Source: Dicyema japonicum (lineage: Eukaryota; Animalia; Dicyemida). Taken from it: a stretch of 64,000 nt of DNA. The stretch spans positions 484,811 to 548,810 of the forward strand of contig RDEW01000016.1 in NCBI GenBank assembly GCA_011109175.1, given 5' to 3'. Below, in pieces: positions 1,201 to 61,699 of the stretch (positions are counted from its first letter, which is position 1; every line of letters begins with the position of its first letter). The notes under the pieces are model-generated. The model saw only the letters and a program-made list of their open reading frames with translations. It ran no database searches and was not told where the DNA came from. The translations under genes and the position numbers were made by a program.

Positions 1201-1668
1201 AAACTCTTTTTTTTAATTATTGTCCGTATGTGATAGCGTTAAAAAAATAAATTAAAAATTGTGGCAGATTTTAAAAATTGGCCAATTTAATAAGGAGAAT
1301 AGGATCATGAAGTGTGTCAAATTGGCTTCCAAACTTCTGTATTTACACCTAGTGATTAGGTAAAATTTATTAACCTCAAGCTTGCAATCTTAGGCAAGCC
1401 CAGCACAAACAGTCATAATTAATAAATCCACGGAAGGAACCCAAGGGAGAACGTCTGCTTGTACCGACCAATTAAATTCTCCAATATTCCACTACAGGCT
1501 TCCGAAGAGAGGTTGCTTCATTCTTTAGCGGAGGAGTTTTCATAAAGTAATCTTCACCAGTTGATTTGGTATGGTGAAGAAAGGAAAATCCCTCTTAACA
1601 ACTGTCTCGTTCCAGAAGGACTCGTCGATATGGCTATTTGATTGACATTTTCTATTCTTTCAATCTGC

Positions 1669-1881
1669 TGACGTCATCAGATCCACCTCACTCAGAAGAC
1701 TCACACTGCCTGACCGGCATTCAAAATGTTTCATTTCTTCATTCCAATGTGAGACTACTTCACTTCTGTCGACGAGTTATGCTAAGACCTCAGTTTCTCA
1801 TGCTGTACCTGGTCGAGAGCTCCACTGGGACGCGTCTGGATCAAGGGATTAGTTAGCTTGTTTTTACTCTGTCTTTGGAAT
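1669..1881 (+). repeat. HDV-like-pseudoknot-headed short interspersed repeat, degenerate full-length copy
   Basis: TGACGTC-AT-CAGATCC-ACC-TCACTCA-GAA-GACTCAC-AC-TGCCtgaccGGCA-TTCAAAA head, and the family tail GGATCAAGG...GTCTTTGGAAT shared with 4479-4745 and 42293-42430. Confidence 0.6.
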
Positions 1882-2239
1882 ATTTTATTTAATTCTATTC
1901 AGTTCCCTTTTATTCCGTCATTATGCGAAGAATGAGGTCTTTTTTGGATCCCGGCCAGGTATTGGAATTTGATGGATACAATGACTCCTGTAGTAATAGA
2001 AGACAAAAGGTAGAACGGAAATCCTTTGACCACATCACCACACATTAACCACGTGGTTTATTTCAGACAATCACAAACGCGGACTTTAACAAGTGTTTAT
2101 ATTCCTTTACTGCCTAAGCACTGAAATAGGGTTAATTCATAAGTTATGAATATCCTTTTTTCAGATCAATTCCTGCGTTTGCAAGACATAAAGACGTCAA
2201 TTGTTAATAGAGATTAAAGTTCAGATGTTAAAGGTTAAC

Positions 2240-2425
2240 GGGCGTCATGAGATCCACTTGTCCAAGGCGACGCCTAGCGCCTGGACGGCATATAAGGCAT
2301 ATAAAGGATCTCGTTCTTCCCTACTCTAATGAAGTGGTTCCACAATGTTGGATTTGAATGGAAAAAATTCGCCTCATTCTGACTGTGGGATCACTTGTTA
2401 GTTGGAGTTACTCTCTGCGTCAAAC
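2240..2425 (+). ncRNA. Candidate HDV-like ribozyme head (2240-2312), best-preserved copy of the short repeat family
   Basis: P1 2240-2246/2269-2275 (7 bp, G1.U wobble), P2 2249-2255/2306-2312 (7 bp), P3 2256-2258/2266-2268 (imperfect), P4 2279-2281/2287-2289, in HDV order. L3 and P1.1 are non-canonical. Confidence 0.5.
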
Positions 2426-3419
2426 CTCGAAGGTATCCTGCGCGTTTTTAATCTGGTATTGCTCCCCCTGTTAGTGGATTAGATATGTGTAGTATTCCAT
2501 ACATTAGCGAGGTCTGAAATAAGCAAAAACAGACAATTTCTTTGATGTTAAAATAATTATGTTGTTCGGTGGTTGGTGTGCAACAGACATGCCAAATATT
2601 TAAATTTTTATTTTTTTAAATTTATTGAACCAGAAAACACCGTCATAGTCAGAATAAAAAAATCCTGTGTTCTCAGCTTCCCTCAGCAGTCTTCACATGC
2701 TCGGACTTGAAGGAAGTGCCGTCCAGGGGAACTCTTTTGAATATAATTGAGGATGAAGTTCCATGAGCCAAAATGGGAAGAGGAACAGAAGAATCAAAAA
2801 TAATCTTCATTTAATGTAGCCACATAGCCACCAACACTAACTTTGGCGCCACTTGGTATAGTTGCTAAAATAGGAATCAAATATTATGTCGCGAGCGCTG
2901 AAAGTGATGCCAGGTGATTTGCCAGGTGTCAACAGCTATCATGTTTATTGCAAATTAATCAATAATTAAGTTTCTGAATAATTTTGTGCATTTTTTTATA
3001 TAAAATCAATATTTTTACTAATAAAGATTAATCTTAGGTAATAATTTATTATTATGAGTAAAGTATTTTATAAAGATTTACGCCAATTTTTGCTGGCATA
3101 CCATAATTTTTGACAATAAAATCAAAAAACTAGCCAACATCAAGATGTCCTGATGCCTAATAAAGTTACCATAAAAACTACTGAAGAGAACAACATTATA
3201 AAATGCATGCTGGAGGGACAAGACCTGAATGTATCAGCAAATCGGAAGTATAGAATAGTTTTTATTTAATTAAAATTTAGGAGAAATAAACAGAAATTTA
3301 ATATTATCGTCGTATGCTCCCATGTTCCGGAATTCGCGGAAGTTGTAGAAAATCCCGACATTTATAATAAAGGTTTTTTATTGTTATTTATTAGTAAAGA
3401 TGATGAGTAACCAGTTAAA

Positions 3420-3720
3420 CTTTGAGAGGGTGAATTTGGAGTCTTCATATTATAGAAGAATGAATAGGAAGATAAGAGTCCATCGATCAAAATATGAGTT
3501 AGATGTTGGAGATATTGAATTCTATTTTTAATCGCTTAAAGGTTCGTATTAAAAAAAATTATGGGACGAATCCATCTCTTCGATTGAAAAAATTTTGAAC
3601 ATCCGTATGGGGATCCAGTTACTATTGTCGAGAAATTGTCTAATAATTTTGTCAAAGTCGAAGATAGTGCTGGTCTATTAAGAAAGTTCATTTAACGACG
3701 ACTAAATTCAAGACGACTTT
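3420..3720 (+). mobile_element. Possible Gypsy/Ginger integrase C-terminal relic
   Basis: Broken frame KFEHPYGDPVTIVEKLSNNFVKVEDSAGLLRKVH resembles the GPY/F region of these integrases. Confidence 0.3.
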
Positions 3721-4099
3721 GAAATAATAGTTAATTATCACTTGTTAGTTGTTAATAATTGACCTTAGTTAACTTTGATGTAATAAATTATTTTTATGAT
3801 CTCAGAGGTTTGGGGTTATTTTTAATTTGTAATTTTTTAAGTTAATGCCGATTTTTATATTTAAAATTTACCAATTTACTATGATTAACAAAATTTACCC
3901 AGTGATGTAGCAAGCGCTGTCCGCTGCGCCGTCATCAACTGGAGGTTCGATTGCCACCTACTTTGTCGAGGAATTCCTTTCTGGTCTTGTCTCCATCTAA
4001 CATGGAGGATACAACCTCTCGATCCCACTCTCAATGGATTCAAAAGACATCGGAAACCTGATAATTTAAAATAAGGGAGCGATTGAGTTATCAATGTCT

Positions 4100-4240
4100 G
4101 GGCTTGAATTCAAAGCTACCCCATATTGGAGGAACTCGGGTATGCCTGAACCGTATCTGATTGCTTATCGGGACAAGAGAGACAAAAGCTGGCTTATTGG
4201 GCGCATTTACTTACTGATCGTCAAGGGAAATAGGTTTTAA
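4100..4240 (+). mobile_element. CRE-like non-LTR 3' fragment
   Basis: RDKRDKSWLIGRIYLLIVKGN parallels the ERRWLFERISLAILRGN C-terminus of ORF 44354-45283. Confidence 0.45.
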
Positions 4241-4478
4241 ATTAAATTTGTTGAACCAGAAAAACACCGTTATAGCCAAAACGAAAAATTCAGATAATCC
4301 CGGTCACTTTCAGTTGCCTTCTATCTTTTCCTGGTGATCAGACTGTGTTCCGGCACATCTACGGTTAGGATATGGTTCACGCGCACGAATCTCTCTGCTA
4401 AAAAATTGCTCCAGTCGCATTAACAATTTTGGACAAAAAACCAACCTTAACTGAAAGCAACTTTTAGTTGTTAGATTT

Positions 4479-4745
4479 ATTCCAAAGACCAAGGGTAACC
4501 AAATTAACTAACTCCTTGATCCTGACTCGTTCCAGCTTTCCAGAGAAAGAAGTTAAAGTAAACAACTAATTAATGTATCCAGTTTCCACTTCTACAGAAG
4601 CAGAGTCCATCCGGAATCAGCATAAAAGGTAAGACGTCCATTACATGCAGTTGTGGAAACCCCTCCAGTGGAGTGGGGGAGAGCAAATGATCCTTTTTTG
4701 TGCCGGTCTGGCACTGGGCGTCACCTAGACAGGTGGATCACATGA
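4479..4745 (-). repeat. HDV-like-pseudoknot-headed short repeat copy
   Basis: Minus strand reads TGATCC-ACC-TGTCTA-GGT-GACGCCC-AG-TGCCagaccGGCA-CAAAAAA-GGATCA (4688-4740), then the family body and tail. Confidence 0.7.
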
Positions 4746-4829
4746 GTTGTTAATTATTATTAGCACTTTCACTAGAGCCATAATATTTATAGCCCCGCAT
4801 GTGCAGCAAAAAATATAAGAGAATTAGTT

Positions 4830-6330
4830 AGGTTGCTCCACGCTCTTCAGTTCTTTGCTAGGTTCCTTAGTGAGTCTAGATCGTCAACAGATGCCAATGT
4901 TTTCTTCACGGCCTTCAGATCGTTATTTAAAACGACCGGGAGGATAGCTATCGTTGTTCAACGAAAGCAATTTACATCGGAGGAGTAGTGATCTTCCTTT
5001 GCGATATTCGGTTGAGATATCAAGTCCAACCTCTGGAAGTCTTCGAAAATTTTCCAACGAGAGCTAATGATCTTGTGGCTTAATGGAGTAAAATCACGTT
5101 TATTGTGCGTTCCATTCTGCGAGATCCTGGATGGCCAGGACATTCCAGTTATGTTTCGTAGATGATTCCTGTGAAATGAGTCTAGCCTCTTCAATTCCTC
5201 TTTAGAGGTGGCCCAGGTCCCAGAGTTGTATAGTAAGATTGGTTTGATAAAAGTGTCGTATAACATAATCCTTTGTTTTATGTTATATCCTTTCCGTTTT
5301 AGCCAAAGATTTTTTAGCCTTTGTAATGCCGCATTTGCTAATGTTTTTCTCCGTTTGATGTCTTTGCTATCTTCTAGTAGAGAGCCAAGTTTCTTTATGT
5401 GTCTCCATTTTTCTTCGAGTGAGTTGTTCATTCGTCTTATTTCTGTCCGTTCTGTTTTTTCCCTGTTCACGGTGAGAAACCATTTCCCAAGTATATCTTG
5501 TGCATTTTCTAGTACATGCTCCAGGAGTTCTATGTCTTAAGAAATTAGGTCGACATCATCAGCATAAATCACTTCTTCTATTTTTCCTTGATATATGGTC
5601 TCAGTTCCCTCATAGCGGCCTCCAAGTATATTGTGAATAGTAGGGGAGAGAGGGAGTCTCCTTGAGGAGTGCCTGTGTTTGTTTCAAATTTTCTTGAGTA
5701 GGTTTTTCCAACTCTCACAAGGAGCTCTGTGTTAGATAGAAAGATTTGAATCATTCTTAGACTCGATTCGTCAATAAACCCTTCCAGCACTGTCATCAAT
5801 TTTTTCCTGTTAACCGAGTCAAAGGCTGTTGATAGATCTATTCCCAGAATGTGGATAGCATTGAAATATCTTTGATGTGTTGCACATCTCCATCTGTGAC
5901 TCCAGACTGCATCAGCTGTTGATCTTCCTTCTCTGAACTCACTTTGACTTTCTGGTAGGTATTCATAGGCGGGTCCTTTTATTCGTTCCAATACAATGTT
6001 AGCTAAGACTTTCCGTAGAGAATTTGATAATATAATAGGTCGTAAGTTTTCAACCGGTCCTTTGGGTTTATTGGGTTTTTGTATAGGTATTGGTAATCTC
6101 GTTCCCAGGGCAAGTTGAGTTAGTTGAAAACATTTCATTTTGTAGTGTAGCGATTTTTTCAAAAAGGGGGTCAGGCCTGTATTTCAGTAATTCTAGGTTT
6201 ATCGTATCTGGTCCAGGGCTTCTGTTATTTTTTAGTTTTTGACATGCTGTTTTTACTTCCAAAATTGAAATTGGTTCTTTTAAGGGTCTAGGCTTTCCTT
6301 TGAATGGGGGGATTGCTGTAGAGTTGTTAA
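4830..6330 (-). mobile_element. RTE-clade non-LTR retrotransposon, reverse transcriptase and 3' end, frameshifted
   Basis: ORFs 6068-6262, 5578-6162 and 4958-5470: NRSPGPD, LRPIILSN, DLSTAFDSV, GTPQGDSLSPLLF; YADD at ~5550-5570; RTE-type C-terminus IKPILLYNSGTW...FHRNHLRNI. Confidence 0.9.
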
Positions 6331-6675: not shown

Positions 6676-6760
6676 ACCACAACTGCAAGGAATGGACGTC
6701 TTCTACCCTTTATACTGGTTCTGGATGGACTCGTGTGACGTTGAAGGATACATTGAATTC
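6676..6760 (+). repeat. Body-only fragment of the HDV-like-headed repeat
   Basis: CCACAACTGCAAGGAATGGACGTCTT...CTGGATGGACTC aligns with the reverse complement of ~4570-4660. Another body fragment lies at ~19645-19695 (-). Confidence 0.55.
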
Positions 6761-33315: not shown

Positions 33316-34059
33316 CATTTAATCCAATATCAATTCAAAAGTTTTAAGATAAGTTGACATTCATTGCACAAAATTTCTACTTTGCTTCATAATTTATGAA
33401 AATAACCGAACCGGACTTACGCCTCTTGAGGCCCTTATGAGACTAGACTCCAGATCACGGGAATGTGGTCCTGAAAATTCAGGCAGTCCTGTACGTTTAT
33501 GCGCGGGTACGAAGGAAGAACACATGCAAAGATGAGGTCTCTGTTAAAATGCATCGGGATCACGTGATAACTAGCTTGTTTTACCGTGGTCTTGGGTTAA
33601 ATAAATAAAAAGATAAGTAAAAGTCTAAGAAATCGAGATCACCTGACGGCCACGAATCCCCTTTTTAATTTATCTATGATTCTTAGTTATAATAAATAAG
33701 TAAAAATCGCGAGGACTGACACAATAGACCGAAGAAACTTAATTAGAAATAATAGGGATTTAATATCCCCCCTATATCACATCGAATTGTAGGATAAATG
33801 AAAGTAAATGATTCTTTAAATGCCAGGTACAAAGGGTGGTAGGCGCGGCAGAGATGTGCGAATTACGGGCCTATACTCTCGTGAATTCCTAGGTTGTGCC
33901 ACAAAAAGACGTTTCTTGCCAAGTTTGCTGATAGATTGATCTTTTTGGACAAGTATCTTGTTCTTATGCTCAAAAATTGTTTCCTGCTTACCAAAATGTT
34001 TTTCAACTTCCAAAGTTCCTCTTACTACGATGAAGAGACTCTCCTTGATGATTAAATTA

Positions 34060-34770: not shown

Positions 34771-34959
34771 AGTGTTCTTTTGACATTTTTAATGAAGAAT
34801 AATAATTAGCGTGGAGTCACCGGATTCAACAATTCTGGAGGCGCTCAGAATGCTCTTAAAGCAGGGGTGGTCAACCGGTCGATCGAAGAGGATTTTTTGG
34901 TTAATCGCAAAGATCCTAGCCCATAGTGCTTGTTTCCACCTGGAAGGAAGATTAGTCGG

Positions 34960-35200
34960 AAGTTCCCATGTTGTTCTTCGATCCCGTTTATAAGTTTGGT
35001 CTCCTGAAGGCAGGCGATTGAAACCTTGTATTTTGAAAGATCCTCGACCAGTTCCTTCCGTTTCCAAACGCTAGAGAGTCCCCTGACGTTAAACGTGAGA
35101 AGGGAGAAGTCCGATGACTTGAAACTGTGTTTTCCAGACATTGAGATCAAGAGCCACGTCACCAGCTCAACCAAAAACAATACATGCCCCAATCTTGGAA
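34960..35200 (-). mobile_element. RTE APE N-terminal fragment
   Basis: LLTFNVRGLSSVWKRKELVEDLSKYKVSIACLQETKL...GGNKHYGLG. It abuts an hAT-type TIR CAGGGGTGGTCAACC at 34862. Confidence 0.8.
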
Positions 35201-36470
35201 AATAATTAATTATTTACCTGAGTTTTGGAGTCTTTACTTCTTTTGCCAGAGAGGAGCGCCACAGACATAAAATACTGATCCCATGATAAATAATTCTCAC
35301 GCTTTTGGCTTTTCATTTGTAGTTTAACAGTTTCAAATATTATTTATACTGACAATAATATTTAATAAATTGTAATATTGTTTCTCCGATTTAACATTTT
35401 TTTGCAAATTGAAAATCTCGGACCTAACAATGTGAGATCACCATTCCAGAATATGATTCTATCATTTTTTCATTCTAACATATTCCAGGCTTCAGAGAAC
35501 TCAGCACATCAGATCAAATTACTACTGTACCCTCATTCGAGGAATTAGTTCACTATGATGTTGACCAAAGTCAGAAACCACGGAACCCACTGAACTCTTT
35601 AGTTGATCTAGATAGGTATCGTTGAGAGGATACACCGTGCCACTCGAGTCAGCAATCAATTAGTTTATTGAATTTTAGAATTAACATTTTGATTACATTT
35701 ATTACTATCTACAACTACCTTCCGACATGTTATCAGCAATTTTTATTGTCCCAGGGGCTATGTGGTGGAGTAATTTCTGATTCATATTCAACAATCATTG
35801 ACATATTTGAGAGAACTGGAATTGCACATTGGTTAGTCATATCTGAATCAATAGAGTTTACATGACAAATCAACTTAATACAAGTATAAATTTATTAAAA
35901 TAAAGATTTGGTTATGGGAGTCTCATTTAGGACCTAATAGTCTCCCAAACCTGATCTGAATCCCCTATTATTAAAACGCACTCCCAAGAAAACATAAAAT
36001 TAGTTACTTTTCCTTTGTGCCTCATTTCTAAACAGTTCTGTACACTGAACGGTCGTTTTCGTCACTTTTAGAAAGCAGACAGAGATGTTGTATTTTGCTA
36101 GATCGTATGTCAGTTGGTGTTTCTTGTCCTTTGCAATTAAAAGTTCCCAGAGTAAACGGAAAAGTAGGTAAGGAATACAAATAAGACATAGAGACGTCAT
36201 CACCTCAACCATTAATTGCCTACAAAAAATAGTAAAGTTCCAACTAAAGGATGGAAGCGGTAATTTGATTTTAATCAAGTTCATCTGCCAGATTACTAGC
36301 ATATCTCATCGATTGATCGACAGTTCTACTAGAATACTTCTCTCGTCACTTGGGCAATTTTTGTCAATAAAGTAAAAAATTCACATGCCCTTAAAATTGT
36401 TTAAAACTTATAAAAATGTGATTTTTTAGGTCAATGTAGAAAACATTTTTATTGATTTTTGTTGATTCAT

Positions 36471-36958: not shown

Positions 36959-37689
36959 TATTGTCATAGCGTTTGCAGTTGAGACACCTCAGCGGACCTC
37001 TTCTGTACTATTCGCATGTGATTGGCACGTGAGCAATGTTGAAACAAGTCGGACAAGCGATGTTGATTCCGCCTTTAATCCAACTGGAACCTTTACAAGA
37101 GGGAGTCTCCATCTGCCTTGTAGAAGCATAAGTTCGTGGTAGAGGGGGCTAATTCCTTGACAAATTAATGAAGGTCGTTATCATTTACCCATAAGGGCAG
37201 GTTGTTCAACTCAATTTCGGAAGATCTCGTCGGAGTTAACTAAGCAATAGATTCCAAGACCATAAGGTGAAGTAGGATCCACATGATCATAAAAGTTCTT
37301 TGTCCCTCCTTTCTGAATTCGAAGCGGAAGATCCCTGAGCCTTCGTGGCTCAATCTGATAAATCCTGTAAAAGTCGAACGAGTACAGCACGTTAGAAATT
37401 TTGATAGCCCCCATATTCGATGTCACAGAAATCTGAGTAAACACATTGCCAGAGTATACAAAGCTGGAGGATCATGAGGAATATACTACGTTTCAGTTCC
37501 TGTAGATGTGCAAACAGTCTGGATCTCGTCTTCAAACTTTTTCACAGATTTAGCTCCTGTAGCTCCTGAAAAGTAATAACTTTTACTGTCGCACTTTTTG
37601 ATTACATTTGAACTAACTTTTGAACCATTTTTTTCCGGCCATTGTCACAAAGACTTCACAACCACGTTTTTTTCAAAAATAGTTGTGTA

Positions 37690-37748
37690 CTTTTGATGCC
37701 GGCCAGGCATTGGGTCTCCTTAGTAAAGTGGATCCAATTACGCCATCA
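37690..37748 (-). repeat. HDV-like head, degenerate copy
   Basis: Minus strand: GGCGT-AATT-GGATCC-ACT-TTACTAA-GGA-GACCC-AA-TGCCtggccGGCA-TCAAAA. Confidence 0.55.
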
Positions 37749-38049
37749 GGCGTAATAAATTGTTTTTATATATTTTATTTATATAATTAAAATAATAAAA
37801 TAAATAATTCAAAAAATCTGTGTTGTATGTCACGGGATAGCAGTTCTTCTAGTTATCGAAGTAGAGATAGATCACATGAACGGTAATTAATAAAACACAT
37901 TGATAGATCAAGAAGGCGTCGTTCTAATAGAAGACATAGTCCTGAAGATAGAAGACAAAGAAAAATCTACTCTCGCAGTCATAGACGACATTCTAAGTAC
38001 AATTTTCTCATTATTGTGTTATAAACTGATTATATTTCTTTCATACTAA

Positions 38050-38805: not shown

Positions 38806-40488
38806 TACTAGTGAATATAGCAGTGAGTATGGTAATCCGTCCAAAATTATAATGCTGCAACAACTTCCTCTTTTTGTTACTGAGAAAGACGTGTGGATAG
38901 TACTTTACCCTTAGATTATGGATAACATGTCTGATCAACGACCTCACTCCATTAGACTCCTCCCAGGTAGTCCGTACACTCATTCAAGGGACCTCACGTG
39001 CCTTGGTTGAATTTAAAAACACTCAGGAGGCCCAACAGTGGATGAAAACATGCAAGGTACCACAACCGTTCTAACACAGGGTACATGGTCTTTAATGGGT
39101 CGGTATGATGTCCCTCTTACCTACGCTGAGTCCCAACCCCTCGAGGAGATGCAGGACTGGACATGTAGTAAGGTAGTCTCCCTTGTGAGCACAGTGTCAT
39201 ATATACAACTTCAAAAAGAGGAACTTTTGCTTTCGGTGTAATATATCCCGCCAAGAATCCTTCGCCAATGTGGGGGAGAACCAAATTGCGAGTGATCCTA
39301 GCAGCAGTACTTCTCGATAATATGTAGCCCTCATACTGAGAGGACTGGATGAATTGACTGATGAGAGTTCCCTAATTTCGGGGTTTTCCAGAATAACCAG
39401 TACCCCCCTCATGAATATGCACGTAGTTAGGGATAGAGACACTCAAAAGTCAAAAGGATTTGCATTTGCCGAGTTATCCACCATCTCAGAAACTTCTGCC
39501 GTGGTGGAAGAGATATCTTTCGGCGGGAAAAGGTTGAGAGCTGATGGAAAAGATGTGCAAGTCGACTTTGCACGTGACTCATTCGACTCAATGTATGGCG
39601 GAGAGTTACAGTAGAATGAATTCGATGGAGAATTGGCCCAAGAAGCCAGAATTCCAGTATTCTGAGGTACTCTTTGGTCTTAGTTTGCGAGGGGTACCAA
39701 GCCGACACGAGCAATGTTGGAGCAGCAGCAGCCCAGGCAGCGATGAATAAGGGGAAGACTAAAAGGAAATCTAGTTGTACTCAGAACCGTGTGTTTTTGG
39801 TGTTATTTGGGGATAGAGACCTCTTCCTATGTTTATGATGAGTCCTCTGGTTATTACTACGACACAGTAAATGGGTTGTACTATGACCCTGTTTCCACTG
39901 TAAGGGATTTTTGTGGTTATTTGACAGTATTTTTACAATCCTATTACTGCACAGTATTTATATTGGAATGGGACCTCATTTGTGCTGCATGTCCAACAAG
40001 AACCTGATAAACAGCCTGAAAAGCCCGCCAAGAAAATTGAATTGAAAAAAGAAAGTGTACAAGTTAAGGCGGCAAAAAAGATCAAACGTGACATGGATAA
40101 GTAGGCCTCTAATCAGAATTCAGTTAAAGTGGACTCTTCCGTGAACATTGATGCTCCAACTCAGTTTGTCCTTCCAGTCGAAAGCCAGAAGGTTGAAATT
40201 GCTGAGAACTTGGTTAATTGGAGTCGTTTAGTGTGTCTTCTATGTAAAAGACAGTTTAATAGTCGTGAGGTGTTAGAAAAGCACGTTAGATTGTCACAAT
40301 TGCATGCGGTTGACCTTTTGATTGATTTCTAGAAAAATCTAGAAGCTTTGAATAAACCACATGGGACGACTGAGAGAGGGAATTTTTTCGATGTATCGGA
40401 CGAGCCAAGTCAGCGACAATATCGTGATAGAGCTAAGGAAAGGCGTGATAAATATGGAGTGTCTGAGCCACCTGGTGATGTTTCCTAA
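38806..40488 (+). CDS. RBM5: RBM5/RBM10-like RNA-binding splicing factor (RRM-RanBP2 ZnF-RRM-OCRE-C2H2), tiny introns, in-frame TAG, no G-patch
   Basis: Ten GT-AG introns (38891-38914, 38967-38988, 39057-39079, 39173-39194, 39307-39327, 39593-39614, 39667-39691, 39789-39816, 39900-39927, 40309-40332) join SKIIMLQQLP, DWTCSKCHIYNFKKRNFCFRC, TLILRGLD...KSKGFAFAE, YVYDESSGYYYDTVNGLYYDP, CLLCKRQFNSREVLEKHVRLSQLH and YRDRAKERRDKYG in one frame. RBM5 versus RBM10 is not resolved. Confidence 0.88.
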
Positions 40489-41690: not shown

Positions 41691-42292
41691 AAATTGGTGT
41701 ATCATTAATGTCAATTTCAAGATTTTCGCTATTCGATTTAATTAAAACTCTGAAACGATTCCTGTCTTCGGATATGTCTTCCCACGCTACTTTTGGAAAA
41801 AACCGTATCTTTTAAAATCAATTTCTTGTAGGAATCATAGATCGAAACATTGTAAAAAAGACCTTCAATTAAAATAATTATGTTAATAGATTAGCCTGAG
41901 CATGGTATAATTACTCTTAAAGATTTTATAATGCCAATATTGATGGATTGAAGTAAACCGGTGAACGATGTGATCGTCAGAGCTCTGAAGGCTACAGGCT
42001 TCCCATCACAACTTTAAACCGTGGGTCTCGATCGAGGAAATGGTTTGCAATGTTGATAGTCCCGAATCCACTTGTAATTTATATTCCAGATATTTCCGTG
42101 GTCTTTCTTCGAATGGGAGGTAGTTAATGGTCCTTTTTTGCGGTGCATTAAGTGCACCCTGAGCGTATGCAGAACTTCCGCAACTGGTAGACCACATGAC
42201 GCCACGTTTGCGTTATTTTACATAACAATAAGATTATGATATCAATTTATTATATATTAAAAAAACACTAGTTTTATCAAAATTAAAGAACA

Positions 42293-42430
42293 GACGCCCA
42301 ATGCCTAGCCGGCATCAGGAGGATCCACTATCCTTTCCCCGGGACAATTTCGTCACCTGGAGACAAGTTCTGGGTCGCTGGAACTAGTCACGATCAAGGA
42401 GTTAGTTTGGTTACCCTTGGTCTTTGGAAT
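42293..42430 (+). repeat. HDV-like-headed short repeat (3' half of head plus tail)
   Basis: GACGCCC-AA-TGCCtagccGGCA-TCAGGA-GGATCC ... GCTGGAACTAGTCACGATCAAGGAGTTAGTTTGGTTACCCTTGGTCTTTGGAAT. Confidence 0.75.
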
Positions 42431-42839
42431 TATTTTAATTAATTTAATCTATTCCACGCGATAAATGAGTCACCTGAGTCTGCCACACCAGGAAATGGAA
42501 ATAATAAAAATTAAAATAAATTATGATTGTCCTCAAATTCCTAAAAGCCAAAAATATAGGCTCAATAAATTGTCTGAATCTTTTGAGTTTGAAGATGAAA
42601 AACAATTTACCTGAAAATGGATTAAGGATGAGATTTTCTACCTCTGGTCAAACAGAATTAAAGATTCTATCGATTCAGGTAACCACTGTTGCTGATCTGA
42701 AAATAGGCTGACCACTATTGGAGGCCATTTGGAAAAACAGGTTATACAGTCTTTTAAAAAAAATGTACGATTTAACGAGAAAAGAAGTTCAAGAAGTAAT
42801 AACTTAGTTCACCTTCTGTAAACCACAAGAATGATGTCG

Positions 42840-44305: not shown

Positions 44306-45536
44306 TTTTTTTTTTAATTTTTATTTTGGCTTTATAAATTTAAACAATAGAAGTCAGGTAGTTGCCGCCCTCACCGCGTGGCTGTTCCCTCTCAAAATTG
44401 CGAGCGAAATTCGCTCAAATAGCCAGCGGCGTTCACGGAGATCTCCAGTGCATGAGGTGATCCGGTTTCCAAGACGTCCGAAAAACTCGAGTGTAGAGGG
44501 GGAGTAGGATCCGGAAGTCTCCATAGCAAGGGGAACAAATTTGACATCATCGGGAAGGTCGACGTATTTAACGAGTTTGGCCTTCTCCGCCTTTACGGAT
44601 GCTGAACAGGCCCTTGTAGCACTCTCGTGAAGATTTTTCTGGGCAAACGTGTCTGTACATGTCACATCCCAAACCAGTGGTTTCCCGGCCTCAAATGGAA
44701 ATATGGTCATCCCGTCCGGTCGTTTCCCGTCACTTCTGCATAACCCGACCGGTTCAAGAATGGCCGAGTATCCAGCAGCATCCATAGCTCGCCTGACAAT
44801 TTCATTCAGAGCCTTGTGCCTTGGGGATCTGCCAGCGCTCCTCCTGCAGGCGAGAGGGTGCAGACCATAGCAGTCTATCAGGATGCCACATCGGCACGGG
44901 TGAGGTACACATACTTTTAGTCCCAGCCGCAGAGAGATACCAGTTCTAACGCATTCATCATCCAGAAAAGTGCCCAAAGCTCCATTGGGGATGGCGTTTA
45001 GCCAAGCTCCGCTCTCAGGGGAAGCCCCCGAAAGCAAATAAGCGCGTCGGTGCTGATTGGCAGATTCTAGTAAGAGTCCAAATGATTTCCAGCATAATAA
45101 GTTGTCCAGGTTTCGCTGGCGATCTTGGGAAGGAGGCAGGGGGAGGTTGGTGGCATTCCAGGCTTCTCGTGCGTGGATTATCTCTTGGTCAGTTGAGAAT
45201 TCGGGTGGGGAGTGTAGAATCCTCCTGACCAAAGGTTCGCAGGCCGTGAGTGATGATAAATGAGCGGGAAGTGAGACGTCCAAAGTTCGACGATTCCAAG
45301 ACCCCCGAATCTAACTGGGAGTGTAGCCTGCATCCATGTATCATCGTCGAATCGGACATTAAATATTTGCTCCGTCGAGCTGAGGAGAGACAAATCAAAA
45401 TTCTCGAGCAGCTCCAGTTGAGAATAATATGGAGCTGTCCTTAGTAGATAAGAGATTCTCTGGATGTTGAGACTTCTTTTCAATAGGAATAGTGCTGTGT
45501 GCAAGTCCAGCAGCTGTAATCAATAGGAATAGTGCT
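44306..45536 (-). mobile_element. 5'-truncated CRE-clade non-LTR insertion with poly(A) and TSD
   Basis: RLE ORF 44354-45283 (HPLACRR CCHC knuckle, KRPDGMT, LVWDVTCTDT). Poly(A) at 44306-44315. TSD GCTGATATCC at 44296-44305 and 45537-45546. Confidence 0.92.
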
Positions 45537-45606: not shown

Positions 45607-45688
45607 TACCAACAGTGGGATTCGAACCCACGCATCCGAAGATAACAGCACCTTAAGCTGCCGCCTTAGACCGCTCGGCCATGTTGGC
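45607..45688 (-). tRNA. trnL-AAG: tRNA-Leu(AAG), 82 nt
   Basis: Acceptor GCCAACA/TGTTGGT, D-arm GCC/GGC, anticodon arm GCAGC-TTAAGGT-GCTGT, long variable arm, T-arm GTGGG-TTCGAAT-CCCAC, oligo-T terminator downstream. Confidence 0.96.
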
Positions 45689-52139: not shown

Positions 52140-54430
52140 CTAAATAATCAAAATTTCTAGGCCTTTATTGAACATCTTAGCTTTGATGAAATCACTGCCC
52201 GGAACATTATTCTTGACAGCTCTTATTGCTATTTTCAGCTCTGCTAGAGAGATCTCTATAAATACTGTTTTCTCCGACAATGGTTCGTAACAAGTATTCT
52301 CCGCGATGACATCCACTTCAAATATCTTTTTAAGTTGTGTCTCAAAAACTAGAGGTATTTCTTCTTCAGCATAAGAGGTGCTATCCGGTTTCTTGAACAC
52401 AATCTTGTTTTCGATTGACTCTAAGTTCTTCGCTCTTCGGTATACCTTCCAGAAAGAAGCATTGTACTTGTTTAGCTTCCCTAGTTGAGAGTTCCACTTA
52501 TTCTCATTTCAACTTCCGAATTAGATAGATATTTTTATTAACATAACTTGGCCTGGTGGCCTAATAGCGCTCTTAAGAAGAGAGGACGGCCACCAAATAA
52601 ATCAGATATAACCAGGATTACCCTGGTTAATGCCCGCTTTCGTAGGAAACGGGCTCCGGGGCTGATAGCTTTTACCAGCGCTGTTGAGATGGATGAATTA
52701 ATTATTAATACAAAGATGAAAAAACCTGGAATTAGTAATATCCCTGGTTATAATTCGATTGATATTCCAAGGCGTCCAGGTGCCATATCTGGTACTGGCA
52801 TTTTTATACAAAAAGTGTATTAAAACGCGATTGCCAAGAATTATCGAAGAGAATGTCTGCGAATTATTACTAATTTATTTATTAACCCCGGGATCACCGA
52901 GAAAGAAAGACAAAAAATGTTAACTAGAGATTCTGTCAGCAGGGGAGGTATTTTTGTTCTACATTGTGGTCCCAGTCTTATGAATTGGAGTGATGAGCGA
53001 GTTCTTCCATATTTGAGGGATAGTGTTCCAGTTAACGGACAGGTTTAAAATTTCCGTTAGGTAGCTAATCGTATTTTCTTAAGTGTTTCGGGTGAATTGA
53101 AGATACTTTGTCCGGGCCACAGACCCGTGAGTTCTTTAATCCGTGATAACCTCTGAGACCTGCTTGTCTAAGAATAGTTCTTGGTAAGGTTCATTTTTCG
53201 GTTTGCGGGCACGTACTTTGATGTCCATTTCAACTTCGTAAGATGGCATTTTTTCATTTGGTTCCTTCGTTTTATGAGTGTAAGTGTCCGGGAATTGAGG
53301 GTAGGTATAAAATTCGTGTATGATGAGAGAGGAATAAATTTGTTGTCAGCCTTTTGAATGGCCACACTGATGATTTTTGAGGCTTCATCTATCAAACGTA
53401 TATGGGATGATAGTCCTTTGACCAATTCCAGGTCTACCAAGTCAGAAAAGCCAGACGAGTCAACCTTCTTATATTTCTTGAAACTTTTCACTTCGGTCAG
53501 CAATGTCCGGCGTCTCCGAAATCCTCTTAACGTAAGAAGGATTGGATTATGGTGGCTGAGAAACCATAGTTCACATCCAATGTAGTGATTCCTGCTAAAG
53601 AGGGAGAACATTAGGTTAAATCAAGAGAGGTGCAGCCATCAGTGCTCCTTAAAGGGGTTCTTGTGTGTAATTTAGGATCATTCAAGATAATCATATCAAC
53701 AAGATCATTTAGGATGAACTCGGTTCAGCTGTCAGAGGACTGTGAAGTTAGCCAAACGGGGTGTCGGGCATTTAGGTCACCTCATATTAGAGCGTTCTTT
53801 AGTACTGAGAGGCGGGGTATATTTAGGGTGCAGGATTTTGGGCAGGATCCTTGTGATGGAATAGATAGGTTATTCAAGTTGATCCAAAGGACGAGTACAG
53901 CTCCATTTTGATGGTGATCTGCTCCATGGAATCGTCCGTCGACTCACGTCAATGAAAGGTATACCGTTTTTTATAATTGAGAGTAGTCCTCCACCTGGTC
54001 TTCCCTAATGATCCTTACGGATTTATGTGTATTCCTGGAAAGAAGGTGTTGGCGTGAAGGATGAGAGCTTGGATTCGTGGATGAGAGCAAGGTCAGCTCG
54101 ATATGCTGAGAGGAGAGCTCGAAGTTCCAGAATCTTCCTTTTAATTCAAATGTATTTGGTTGTAGAATTATTATGTCTCCACGTGGACCAGGGTTTGTTT
54201 CAATGTCGCCACATAGCAGGATCCAAAGTCCAGAACAGTGATGACACAAGACGGAGTCGGATACACATAAGTTACGGGAACCCCCAAGAGGTGGGGAGAA
54301 GTTAATGGCTCTTTTCGTTCCTTTCCGAAATAGGTGACACCTTATCGGGTGAACCACAAGACACCACAGCACATAATCATGCAACCTCTGCCAATTATTA
54401 TGCATCGATTTGTACACTTCCATTGGTTGG
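52140..54430 (-). mobile_element. APE-type LINE relic with an N-terminal 2A-like motif; interrupted by a plus-strand APE fragment (52548-52823)
   Basis: ILLCGDIETNPGP (54184-54222), then APE remnants (DLALIHESKL, GGGLLSIIKNGIPF, SHHNPILLTL), and AIRAVKNNVPGSDFI (pre-RT) at 52140-52400. Confidence 0.75.
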
Positions 54431-60015: not shown

Positions 60016-61027
60016 ACGCCATAATAGTTATTGTAGCATGTTTACTAGTCAATACATATTTATAGTAACTATAATAATATGTTAAAATATTATAATCATA
60101 ATCACTGAAATGCTCATCTGTTATCTAAGAATCAATGTTCACGTGTACAATTTTGTTATTGTCAATATATGAAATTTTGATATTTCCACTTATTACTCCT
60201 CTGATCCTCTTTTCTTTAAATAAAAACCAAATCGGCGTATTTGGGTCATTATTTGGGTTACAGTCGTTTGCTAAATAAATCTTAATTAAAACCTTTTCCA
60301 GTAAAATAATTCAAAAAACCATTATCGTGATATTGCAACTTGTTTGAATAAATTGTAACAGATAAATTATTCGTAAATCTAATATGAGTAAAACCACATC
60401 GGTAGTAATCCCCATATTTAGTTTGTGGTCTCTTTGTGATATTTTTATAATGTTTACCACCTTAAGTACAACAAAAAAGTACCATAAACAATTTCTGTTA
60501 TTAAGTCAATAGTATAAAACTCATCGTAAAAGTGTGGAATAAGTTTAAAATTCATATTATCTAAATATAAACTATAATCTCCAATAGTTTTCCAGTCATC
60601 TATATGTTGATCCCTATTTAACATCCATAAACTAGATTCCTAAAGTTAACGAAATATATACTTTAGAAGGAGTTTTCAGAATTGCATATGAGTCAATTAC
60701 TATATATCTCCAATCACATTTTATTTTAACGATTTTGCTGAAAAGAATAAATATTACAAAATGAATAGTTCTGTTCATGTAATCTAAATTTTATTAGGTC
60801 AAATTTTATTTTATTTAACATTTCAATATAATTTTTTTATTTAATTATTACTTAATATCTATAATAATAGATATTTTATAACGATTTTTTATTATTAGTC
60901 AAAAATTTTAGCATGACGAATTTCTCTTGATAAATATTTTTCAATATCTTGACAAGGCGGCAAACGCCTTGTTGTGTTATATAGTTATTTGATTAAATTT
61001 TTTTCGTTCTATCTAATGTTTTCATTA

Positions 61028-61247
61028 AATCCTACTAACTCAAGGGACGGCAAATGTTTGTCAGCATTCAAAAAAATAAACTATTCATCCCACAGGGAGA
61101 CAATTTCGTTCCCTGCCGACAAGTTCTGGAATTGATCTCAGCTTTTCGGTGGACGTCTTCTGGATCACTGTTCTTGTGTGATGGTTTTTCTGGAATACGT
61201 CAGGATCAGTAAATTTGATTGGTTTTACTTTTGGTTTTCGGAATAAT
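61028..61247 (+). repeat. HDV-like-headed short repeat, degenerate full-length copy
   Basis: CCTACTAACTCAAGGGACGGCAAATGTTTGTCAGCATTCAAAA head, GACAATTTCGT..CCTG..GACAAGTTCTGG body as in 42345-42375, GGATCA...GGAAT tail. Confidence 0.55.
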
Positions 61248-61699
61248 TATTTATTAATGGAAATTCACTATTATAAATAAATGTGTCAAATTCAGGACTT
61301 TGTGTATTCACGGTGCATGAAAAAGTAATTGTTTGACAAGATTTCAAAATAATAACAACAGCTTTTATTTAGAGGAATGTGAATGTTTCCACTTTTGCAG
61401 GAGGATATATATGTCGTGTCCCGCACGAGTTACTCTACCCATCCCGTGTTGGTTACAAATCACCTGTCAATCAACCCGTAGCCTGTCATTCAATCAATAT
61501 TAATTTTTTTATGATAACTGTTATACTGAACTAATTTGAAGAAAGAAAATAGAATAAAAGGTTATATAGAGGCTGCTCTTCTCGGCCTTCTCATTGGCAG
61601 AACAGCTCCAGAGACAGAGAGAATGCTCCAAACTCTATTGTAATAATCCTAAATTCTGGAACTTTTTTGGATAGGAAAGGTGAAAAGGTGAATCTTAAG

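Follow-up and report, generated by a model that had tools for sequence, protein, structure and literature searches.

Introduction

Short retroposons that are headed by a ribozyme or by a piece of a LINE are already known, and the family that is described in this study would be a new member of this group in a new host. The NARTc, RIME and SIDER elements of trypanosomatids have retained an HDV-like 5' module from their LINE, and many of the copies are inactive (PMC4035085, PMC3185411, PMC3383444). Like the family studied here, the elements of the L1Tc/NARTc, ingi/RIME and SIDER systems are short, non-autonomous and carry a 5' module, which in their case is ~77 nt long and common to them and their LINE (the Pr77 hallmark, L1TcRz). 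The L1Tc-type module further resembles ours in being an HDV-like double pseudoknot with a non-canonical P1 and P1.1 that has lost its fold or its activity in many copies (PMC4035085, PMC3185411). However, the cleavage and the promoter activity of the L1Tc type are experimental findings and its ribozyme starts with C1, whereas the present family is known from sequence alone; the two have no sequence similarity, and the host here is an animal, Dicyema japonicum.

According to reviews, diverse metazoans have HDV-like ribozymes in their LINEs and in non-autonomous SINEs (PMC6765202), and SIDEs of R2 have also been described (PMC3414825). The ribozymes of R2, RTE, Baggins and the R2 SIDEs have the order of the helices, a P1 that begins with G, a P3 of 3 bp, a short P4 and a C in J4/2 in common with the present family, in which six of the seven copies have this C. 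Their role is to free the RNA of a promoter-less element from co-transcripts (PMC6765202, PMC3414825), and the same role is proposed here. They differ in that they have a canonical L3/P1.1 (CC with GG) or a demonstrated activity, whereas in our family L3 is of the (G/T)(T/A)CT type, J1/4 is of the A(A/G/C) type and there is no Rfam match. In his study of bipartite non-autonomous LINEs, Kojima (2018) also discussed the truncation of SINEs by a 5' ribozyme (PMC5786205). Matetovici et al. (2016) described the TSD-flanked LP-SINEs of molluscs, whose head of ~70 bp is common to the 5' ends of Nimb and RTE and was likened by the authors to the promoter/ribozyme of L1Tc (PMC4758252). Both the LP-SINEs and the bipartite LINEs resemble the family studied here in being short, flanked by TSDs and devoid of a small-RNA head; theirs is a ~70-bp head from the 5' end of a LINE, and their tail is common to LINEs and SINEs (PMC4758252, PMC5786205). 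The LP-SINE heads were interpreted as promoters and not as ribozymes, and their likeness to the present family is by description only.

The genome of D. japonicum collected from Octopus sinensis appeared in 2019; it has a size of 67.5 Mb, a GC content of 36.7% and 49% of repeats (PMC6736024). The window analysed here, i.e., the whole stretch of 64 kb, is AT-rich eukaryotic DNA with a GC content of about 36-37%. An initial annotation had proposed that it contains a short non-coding element with a self-cleaving head, possibly a new HDV-like structural variant; the family proved to be real, but its type was not new, as the NARTc/RIME/SIDER elements, R2 SIDEs and LP-SINEs show. The reading that we hold to be probable is that positions 2240-2362 are a copy of an old non-autonomous non-LTR retroposon with a 5' module of the HDV double-pseudoknot type, which likely derives from the self-cleaving heads of LINEs, and that the copies found here are relics.

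A dispersed family of short retroposons

Self-comparison and profile searches of the 64-kb window revealed a dispersed repeat family with seven heads, four common tails and two TSDs (Table 1). The copies are 70-84% identical to one another and the family is therefore old. Its architecture comprises a 5' module of ~65 nt, a body that varies and a LINE-type tail of ~75 nt with the sequence GGATCAAGGAGTTAGTT ... TCTTTGGAAT, which ends in GGAAT plus A/T-rich repeats. All of the related heads that had been listed in the initial annotation (1669, 4688-4745(-), 37690-37748(-), 42293, 61028 and a weak one at ~1935-1970(-)) were matched by nhmmer, and the body pieces that it had placed at 6676 and ~19650 were found as well. 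It had also counted five copies with the tail, of which the profile search bore out only four (1669, 4744, 42293 and 61028); the 2240 and 37748 copies had no match to the tail or body. An extra weak match to the family tail was observed at 33548-33602 (+) (E 0.001) with neither a head nor a body close by.

Table 1. Coordinates of the family copies and of the parts of the 2240 copy in the window
Feature	Position	Strand	Remark
P1, 2240 copy	2240-2246 / 2269-2275	+	GGGCGTC/GACGCCT, 7 bp, G.U first
P2, 2240 copy	2249-2255 / 2306-2312	+	GAGATCC/GGATCTC, 7 bp
P3, 2240 copy	2257-2259 / 2264-2266	+	CTT/AAG
L3, 2240 copy	2260-2263	+	
P4, 2240 copy	2279-2281 / 2287-2289	+	GCC/GGC
J4/2, 2240 copy	2290-2305	+	
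Tandem duplication of the 9-mer GGCATATAA	2287-2304	+	lengthens J4/2 or the P4 loop of the 2240 copy
Start of element body, 2240 copy	2313-2362	+	homologous to copy 4744(-)
Head, 2240 copy	2233-2316	+	nhmmer, E 9e-20
Head, 1669 copy	1663-1744	+	nhmmer
Head, 4744 copy	4754-4675	-	nhmmer
Head, 37748 copy	37751-37674	-	nhmmer
Head, 61028 copy	61011-61092	+	nhmmer
Head, 42293 copy	42289-42341	+	nhmmer; 5'-truncated, begins inside the module
Weak head remnant	1992-1928	-	nhmmer, E 0.005
Tail, 1669 copy	1815-1892	+	~75 nt, profile search
Tail, 4744 copy	4548-4468	-	~75 nt, profile search
Tail, 42293 copy	42368-42442	+	~75 nt, profile search
Tail, 61028 copy	61178-61250	+	~75 nt, profile search
Copy 1669	1658-1892	+	flanked by 8-nt direct repeats; has head, body and tail; P1 and P2 broken
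Copy 4744	4474-4744	-	best-preserved core (P2, P3, P4 intact), J4/2 CAAAAAA; first 5-6 nt of P1 missing
Copy 37748	37674-37751	-	head only, no body or tail by profile; P3 and P4 kept, P1 and P2 broken
Copy 42293	42289-42442	+	5'-truncated, starts with the 3' strand of P1; body and tail present
Copy 61028	61011-61250	+	decayed; head, body and tail
Body-only fragment, 4744-type subfamily	6677-6759	+	blastn, 77% over 92 nt, E 1e-11
Body-only fragment	19692-19636	-	blastn, 93% over 41 nt; nhmmer, E 0.011

TSDs, which had been suggested as a check, were found around two of the copies. The 1669 copy is flanked by TTCTATTC (1650-1657 and 1893-1900), and the match to the tail profile stops exactly at the repeat; as bounded in this way, 12 nt of the element precede the position of P1. 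The 4744(-) copy is flanked by TAACAACT (4745-4752 and 4466-4473) and, of the 5' strand of P1, has kept only the final one or two bases, with which it opens. Using ARAGORN and Rfam, no tRNA-like head was found beside any of the copies, nor were 5S- or 7SL-type heads with A and B boxes, which agrees with the earlier description of a short non-coding retroposon family without a tRNA-type head. The single RNA gene that was detected in the window, tRNA-Leu(AAG) at 45607-45688 (-), is unrelated to the family; it adjoins a 309-aa ORF at 44354-45283 (-) that has no Pfam match. Within the 64 kb, no LINE that carries the family head or tail was found.

The shared heads and tails, the TSDs and the lack of a tRNA-like head support the assignment of the family to the short non-coding, non-autonomous non-LTR retroposons, with a conserved module that lies at the 5' end or close to it. 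It has the features of the bipartite non-autonomous LINEs and the LP-SINEs, being short and having no ORF, no small-RNA head, TSDs and a conserved LINE-type 3' tail; the tRNA-, 5S- or 7SL-derived head of a classical Pol III SINE is lacking. As the TSDs and the 5' truncations show, the copies were inserted by the target-primed reverse transcription of a partner LINE.

The 2240 copy

The helices of 2240-2312 pair exactly as had been claimed (sequence reading and pair table), and the 2240 copy is the only one in the window in which all four of them are intact. A local alignment of 2245-2362 with 4745-4637(-) had 85 identities in 106 positions, with a score of 85 versus 22 +/- 3.5 for shuffled sequences. 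The element had initially been drawn as far as 2425 and credited with the common tail; we found that the homology ends at 2362, that nothing in 2313-2480, after the head, matches the tail or body profile and that no TSD could be found around the copy. The locus was covered 18-32x in three whole sequencing runs (138-186 Mb of contigs each). Paralogous contigs pile up over 2284-2367. At 80% likeness none were placed on 2228-2283, whereas the head of the 1669 copy draws ~25 times the base depth; the head at 2240 has thus diverged from the rest of the family.

The copy has three peculiarities in its core. J4/2 had been annotated as (T)CAAAA, and six of the seven copies do have the putative catalytic C followed by a run of A's; in the 2240 copy, this C is a T (TATAAA vs. 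TCAAAA). In the viral HDV enzyme, the C75U change results in an inactive molecule (PMC13635239). Moreover, the 9-mer at the 3' side of P4 is duplicated (Table 1), and 9 nt at 2287 are absent from the contig of one sequencing run. Finally, in this copy only, the L3 segment GTCCA (2260-2264) is complementary to the P4 loop TGGAC (2282-2286), and the nested MFE fold uses the resulting hairpin (-25.8 kcal/mol; each of the two nested halves of the HDV model reaches about -13). The T in place of the would-be catalytic C, the duplication and the stronger L3/P4-loop hairpin speak against a functional 2240 copy, and the locus itself likely has no function. Positions 2240-2362 are a dead, 3'-incomplete copy, i.e., a neutral relic that has kept its helices and lost the junction cytosine.

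Evidence for a double pseudoknot

We searched for the HDV helix order using a descriptor that required G at position 1, 7 bp in P1 and in P2, 3 bp in P3 and in P4 and allowed flexible joints. The strict version had two matches in the window (2240 and one AT-rich site) compared to a mean of 0.7 in 20 dinucleotide shuffles, and because of this the topology of a single locus proves nothing; in 128 kb, at this stringency, the helix order at one locus is no rarer than expected by chance. Looser versions matched about every 4 kb, and the descriptor was dropped as a finder of further modules because it was too unspecific. When metagenomes were scanned for the pattern of the module, 19 loci were found, and these were without exception chance matches in bacterial contigs with a GC content of 60-76%.

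The real support for the fold comes from the family and not from the single locus, namely from the pair-preserving changes between the 2240 and 4744(-) copies and from the complementarity of the P1 strands across copies. Between these two copies, 5 of the 26 positions of P2, P3 and P4 differ, and all five changes preserve the pairing. In a simulation, random substitutions were equally pair-preserving in 0.16% of the trials, or in 1.2% when a strong transition bias was assumed (p 0.0016-0.012). From 2240 to 4744(-), an A-T pair of P2 became T-A, which is the compensatory change that had been pointed out in the initial annotation, a G-C pair of P2 became G.U, and, in addition to what had been noticed, a T-A pair of P3 became C-G. 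The MFE fold of the 4744(-) copy consists of P2, P3 and P4. In the case of P1, the 5' strand GGCGT is present in the 2240 and 37748 copies and the 3' strand GACGCC in the 2240, 4744 and 42293 copies; apart from 2240, which alone has both of them, the strands are complementary only across copies. The P4 stem was kept in five copies while its loops vary, as the pair table confirmed.

The complete nested double pseudoknot P1-P2-P3-P3'-P1'-P4-P4'-P2' was found in the 2240 copy; P2, P3 and P4 pair in the 4744(-) copy, and the order is broken elsewhere. P1 pairs in one of the four testable copies and P2 in two of the six, and in the abundant paralogues nearest to the 1669 copy, the 3' strand of P1 reads GACTCC and is thus not complementary to GACGTC. 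The broken P1 and P2 helices of the other copies are as expected under neutral decay. The seven decayed copies, which have indels in J4/2, provide no dependable alignment columns for a covariance model.

The putative catalytic core

The Rfam models of the HDV type (HDV, CPEB3 and drz) had no match in the window at the gathering threshold or at E<=1, and none in 2225-2325, 4660-4770 and 1600-2500 at E<=10, which is a weak negative because the HDV models are narrow. The initial annotation had described P1.1 partners of AA/AG and an L3 without CC and G25 as unusual. Indeed, none of the copies has the canonical P1.1 (CC/GG), and L3 lacks the canonical CC and G, but such a core is not new. A possible P1.1 would be formed by U:A plus C:G in the 4744(-) copy and by U:A plus C.A in the 37748 and 42293 copies. 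Crystal structures are available for fast HDV-like ribozymes in which P1.1 consists of U:A plus C:U or U:U (PMC13635239), and the L1Tc-type ribozymes depart from the canonical P1/P1.1 (PMC4035085). For these reasons, the core of the family is neither new nor does it exclude activity. The P1.1 of the fast ribozymes, a U:A and a non-Watson-Crick pair, shows that A-for-G partners are compatible with activity (PMC13635239); the comparison is by description and descent is not claimed.

The starts of the copies differ in relation to G1. The 1669 and 37748 copies have a CTGMT leader in common directly before P1, and the paralogous contigs align from 1664 or 1650, i.e., upstream of P1; the 4744 and 42293 copies are truncated within the module. 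The 12-nt leader that is delimited by the TSD of the 1669 copy and the leader common to two copies argue weakly against cutting at G1, the leader evidence being that of two or three copies.

Origin of the module and alternative explanations

The comparison with the described systems suggests that self-cleaving heads of LINEs are the most likely ancestors of the 5' module, which is a nested double pseudoknot like that of the HDV ribozyme. In the source elements, it may fold co-transcriptionally, and the cut, if the module is active, is predicted just 5' of P1, where it would free the RNA of the element from read-through transcripts; the copies in the window are neutral relics. A more specific proposal, that the intact source copies cleave themselves by means of an atypical HDV core (L3 lacking CC and G25; P1.1 of U:A plus C:R) and in this way define the 5' end of a short retroposon that has no promoter, seems unlikely to us. 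If the intact copies were to cut, ribozyme-headed non-autonomous retroposons, which are known from trypanosomes and from insect R2, would also occur in a lophotrochozoan parasite, and the family would be a natural test of how far the HDV core (L3, P1.1) can drift. An active atypical core would represent a structural variant that is new to the class, in a dicyemid parasite of an unstudied phylum. The family head and the conserved LINE-derived head (~70 bp) of the mollusc LP-SINEs, which is unexplained, might then be one and the same device, and this would provide a concrete hypothesis for the latter.

The head could instead be a module that is truly structured, as RNA or DNA, but has no cleavage activity. 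It might be bound by the protein of the LINE, act in stabilisation or translation, or be a promoter within the element, and its HDV-like helices would be an inheritance. The atypical core without an Rfam match is consistent with this, as are the leader kept in the 1669 and 37748 copies and the paralogous contigs that extend beyond P1. Other systems offer parallels: the LP-SINE heads were interpreted as promoters (PMC4758252), a promoter was likewise proposed for Pr77, and the R2 protein binds the pseudoknot of the ribozyme (PMC6765202). However, a J4/2 with a C followed by A's and a P1 of 6-7 bp that is initiated by G are what a cutter requires, a weak P1.1 is tolerated by fast ribozymes (PMC13635239), and the leader is seen in two or three copies. 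We consider a non-cutting module rather unlikely. The preferred origin from self-cleaving LINE heads also has to be weighed against mere coincidence of the helix order, with a head that was conserved by common descent and had no selected RNA structure. The counts of the strict and loose descriptors and the broken P1 and P2 of most copies would fit such a coincidence, but the substitutions between the 2240 and 4744 copies keep the pairing and the MFE fold of 4744 recovers three of the helices; furthermore, the chance matches of the descriptor are AT-rich or coding, whereas the 2240 match has GC-rich helices inside a repeat head. We regard a coincidence as quite improbable.

It is extremely unlikely that the copies are merely 5'-truncated LINEs or an untranslated region of a LINE and not a separate short element. 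Such a reading could be prompted by the 4744(-) copy, which lies 200 nt downstream of the ORF of a reverse transcriptase (RT) at 4958-6162 (-), but this copy has its own 8-nt TSD, and its assignment to the 3' UTR of the adjoining RT was ruled out on this basis. Moreover, three copies begin a few bases from P1 with unrelated flanks, and none of the copies in the window continues into an ORF, a continuation that the initial annotation had said would reduce the element to a LINE 5' UTR.

Genomic surroundings

The RT fragment (RVT_1, E 2e-21) is unrelated to the 4744(-) copy that lies directly 3' of it. Among its named relatives, the best are uncharacterised O. sinensis proteins with a protein identity of 59-65%, which is too low to suggest a recent transfer between host and parasite. 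We also searched four ~20-kb loci with RT homologues, two from O. sinensis and two from ENA assemblies. They contained no family copies, apart from one weak head match (E about 0.02), and had no repeats in common with the window; about 40 kb of O. sinensis DNA was thus without a family copy. N-termini that resemble LINE endonucleases (FNVRGL ... CLQETK type, weak Exo_endo_phos match) were observed at 34845-35192 (-) and 36000-36302 (-), and no family head was found upstream of these LINE starts. A 2A-like motif, CGDIETNPGP, is present at 54195-54233 (-) in a 150-aa ORF at 53971-54423 (-), which probably represents the beginning of a 2A-type LINE that has decayed. Within 300 nt upstream of 54423(-), there was neither an HDV-order fold nor a family head, and the downstream ORFs had no Pfam domain.

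Family copies flank an RBM5/10-like gene on both sides, at 37.7 kb and 42.3 kb. This gene (39300-40360 (+)) has RRM, OCRE and zf-C2H2 domains within 1 kb and an in-frame TAG at 40102-40104 with no frameshift around it. Its OCRE is split by a GT-AG intron of 28 nt (39900-39927), across which the reading frame joins exactly, a feature that, along with the GC content, the small size of the runs and the year of sampling, fits a dicyemid genome and not that of an octopus; among animals, introns of such a size are known only in myxobolids and D. japonicum (PMC13644364).
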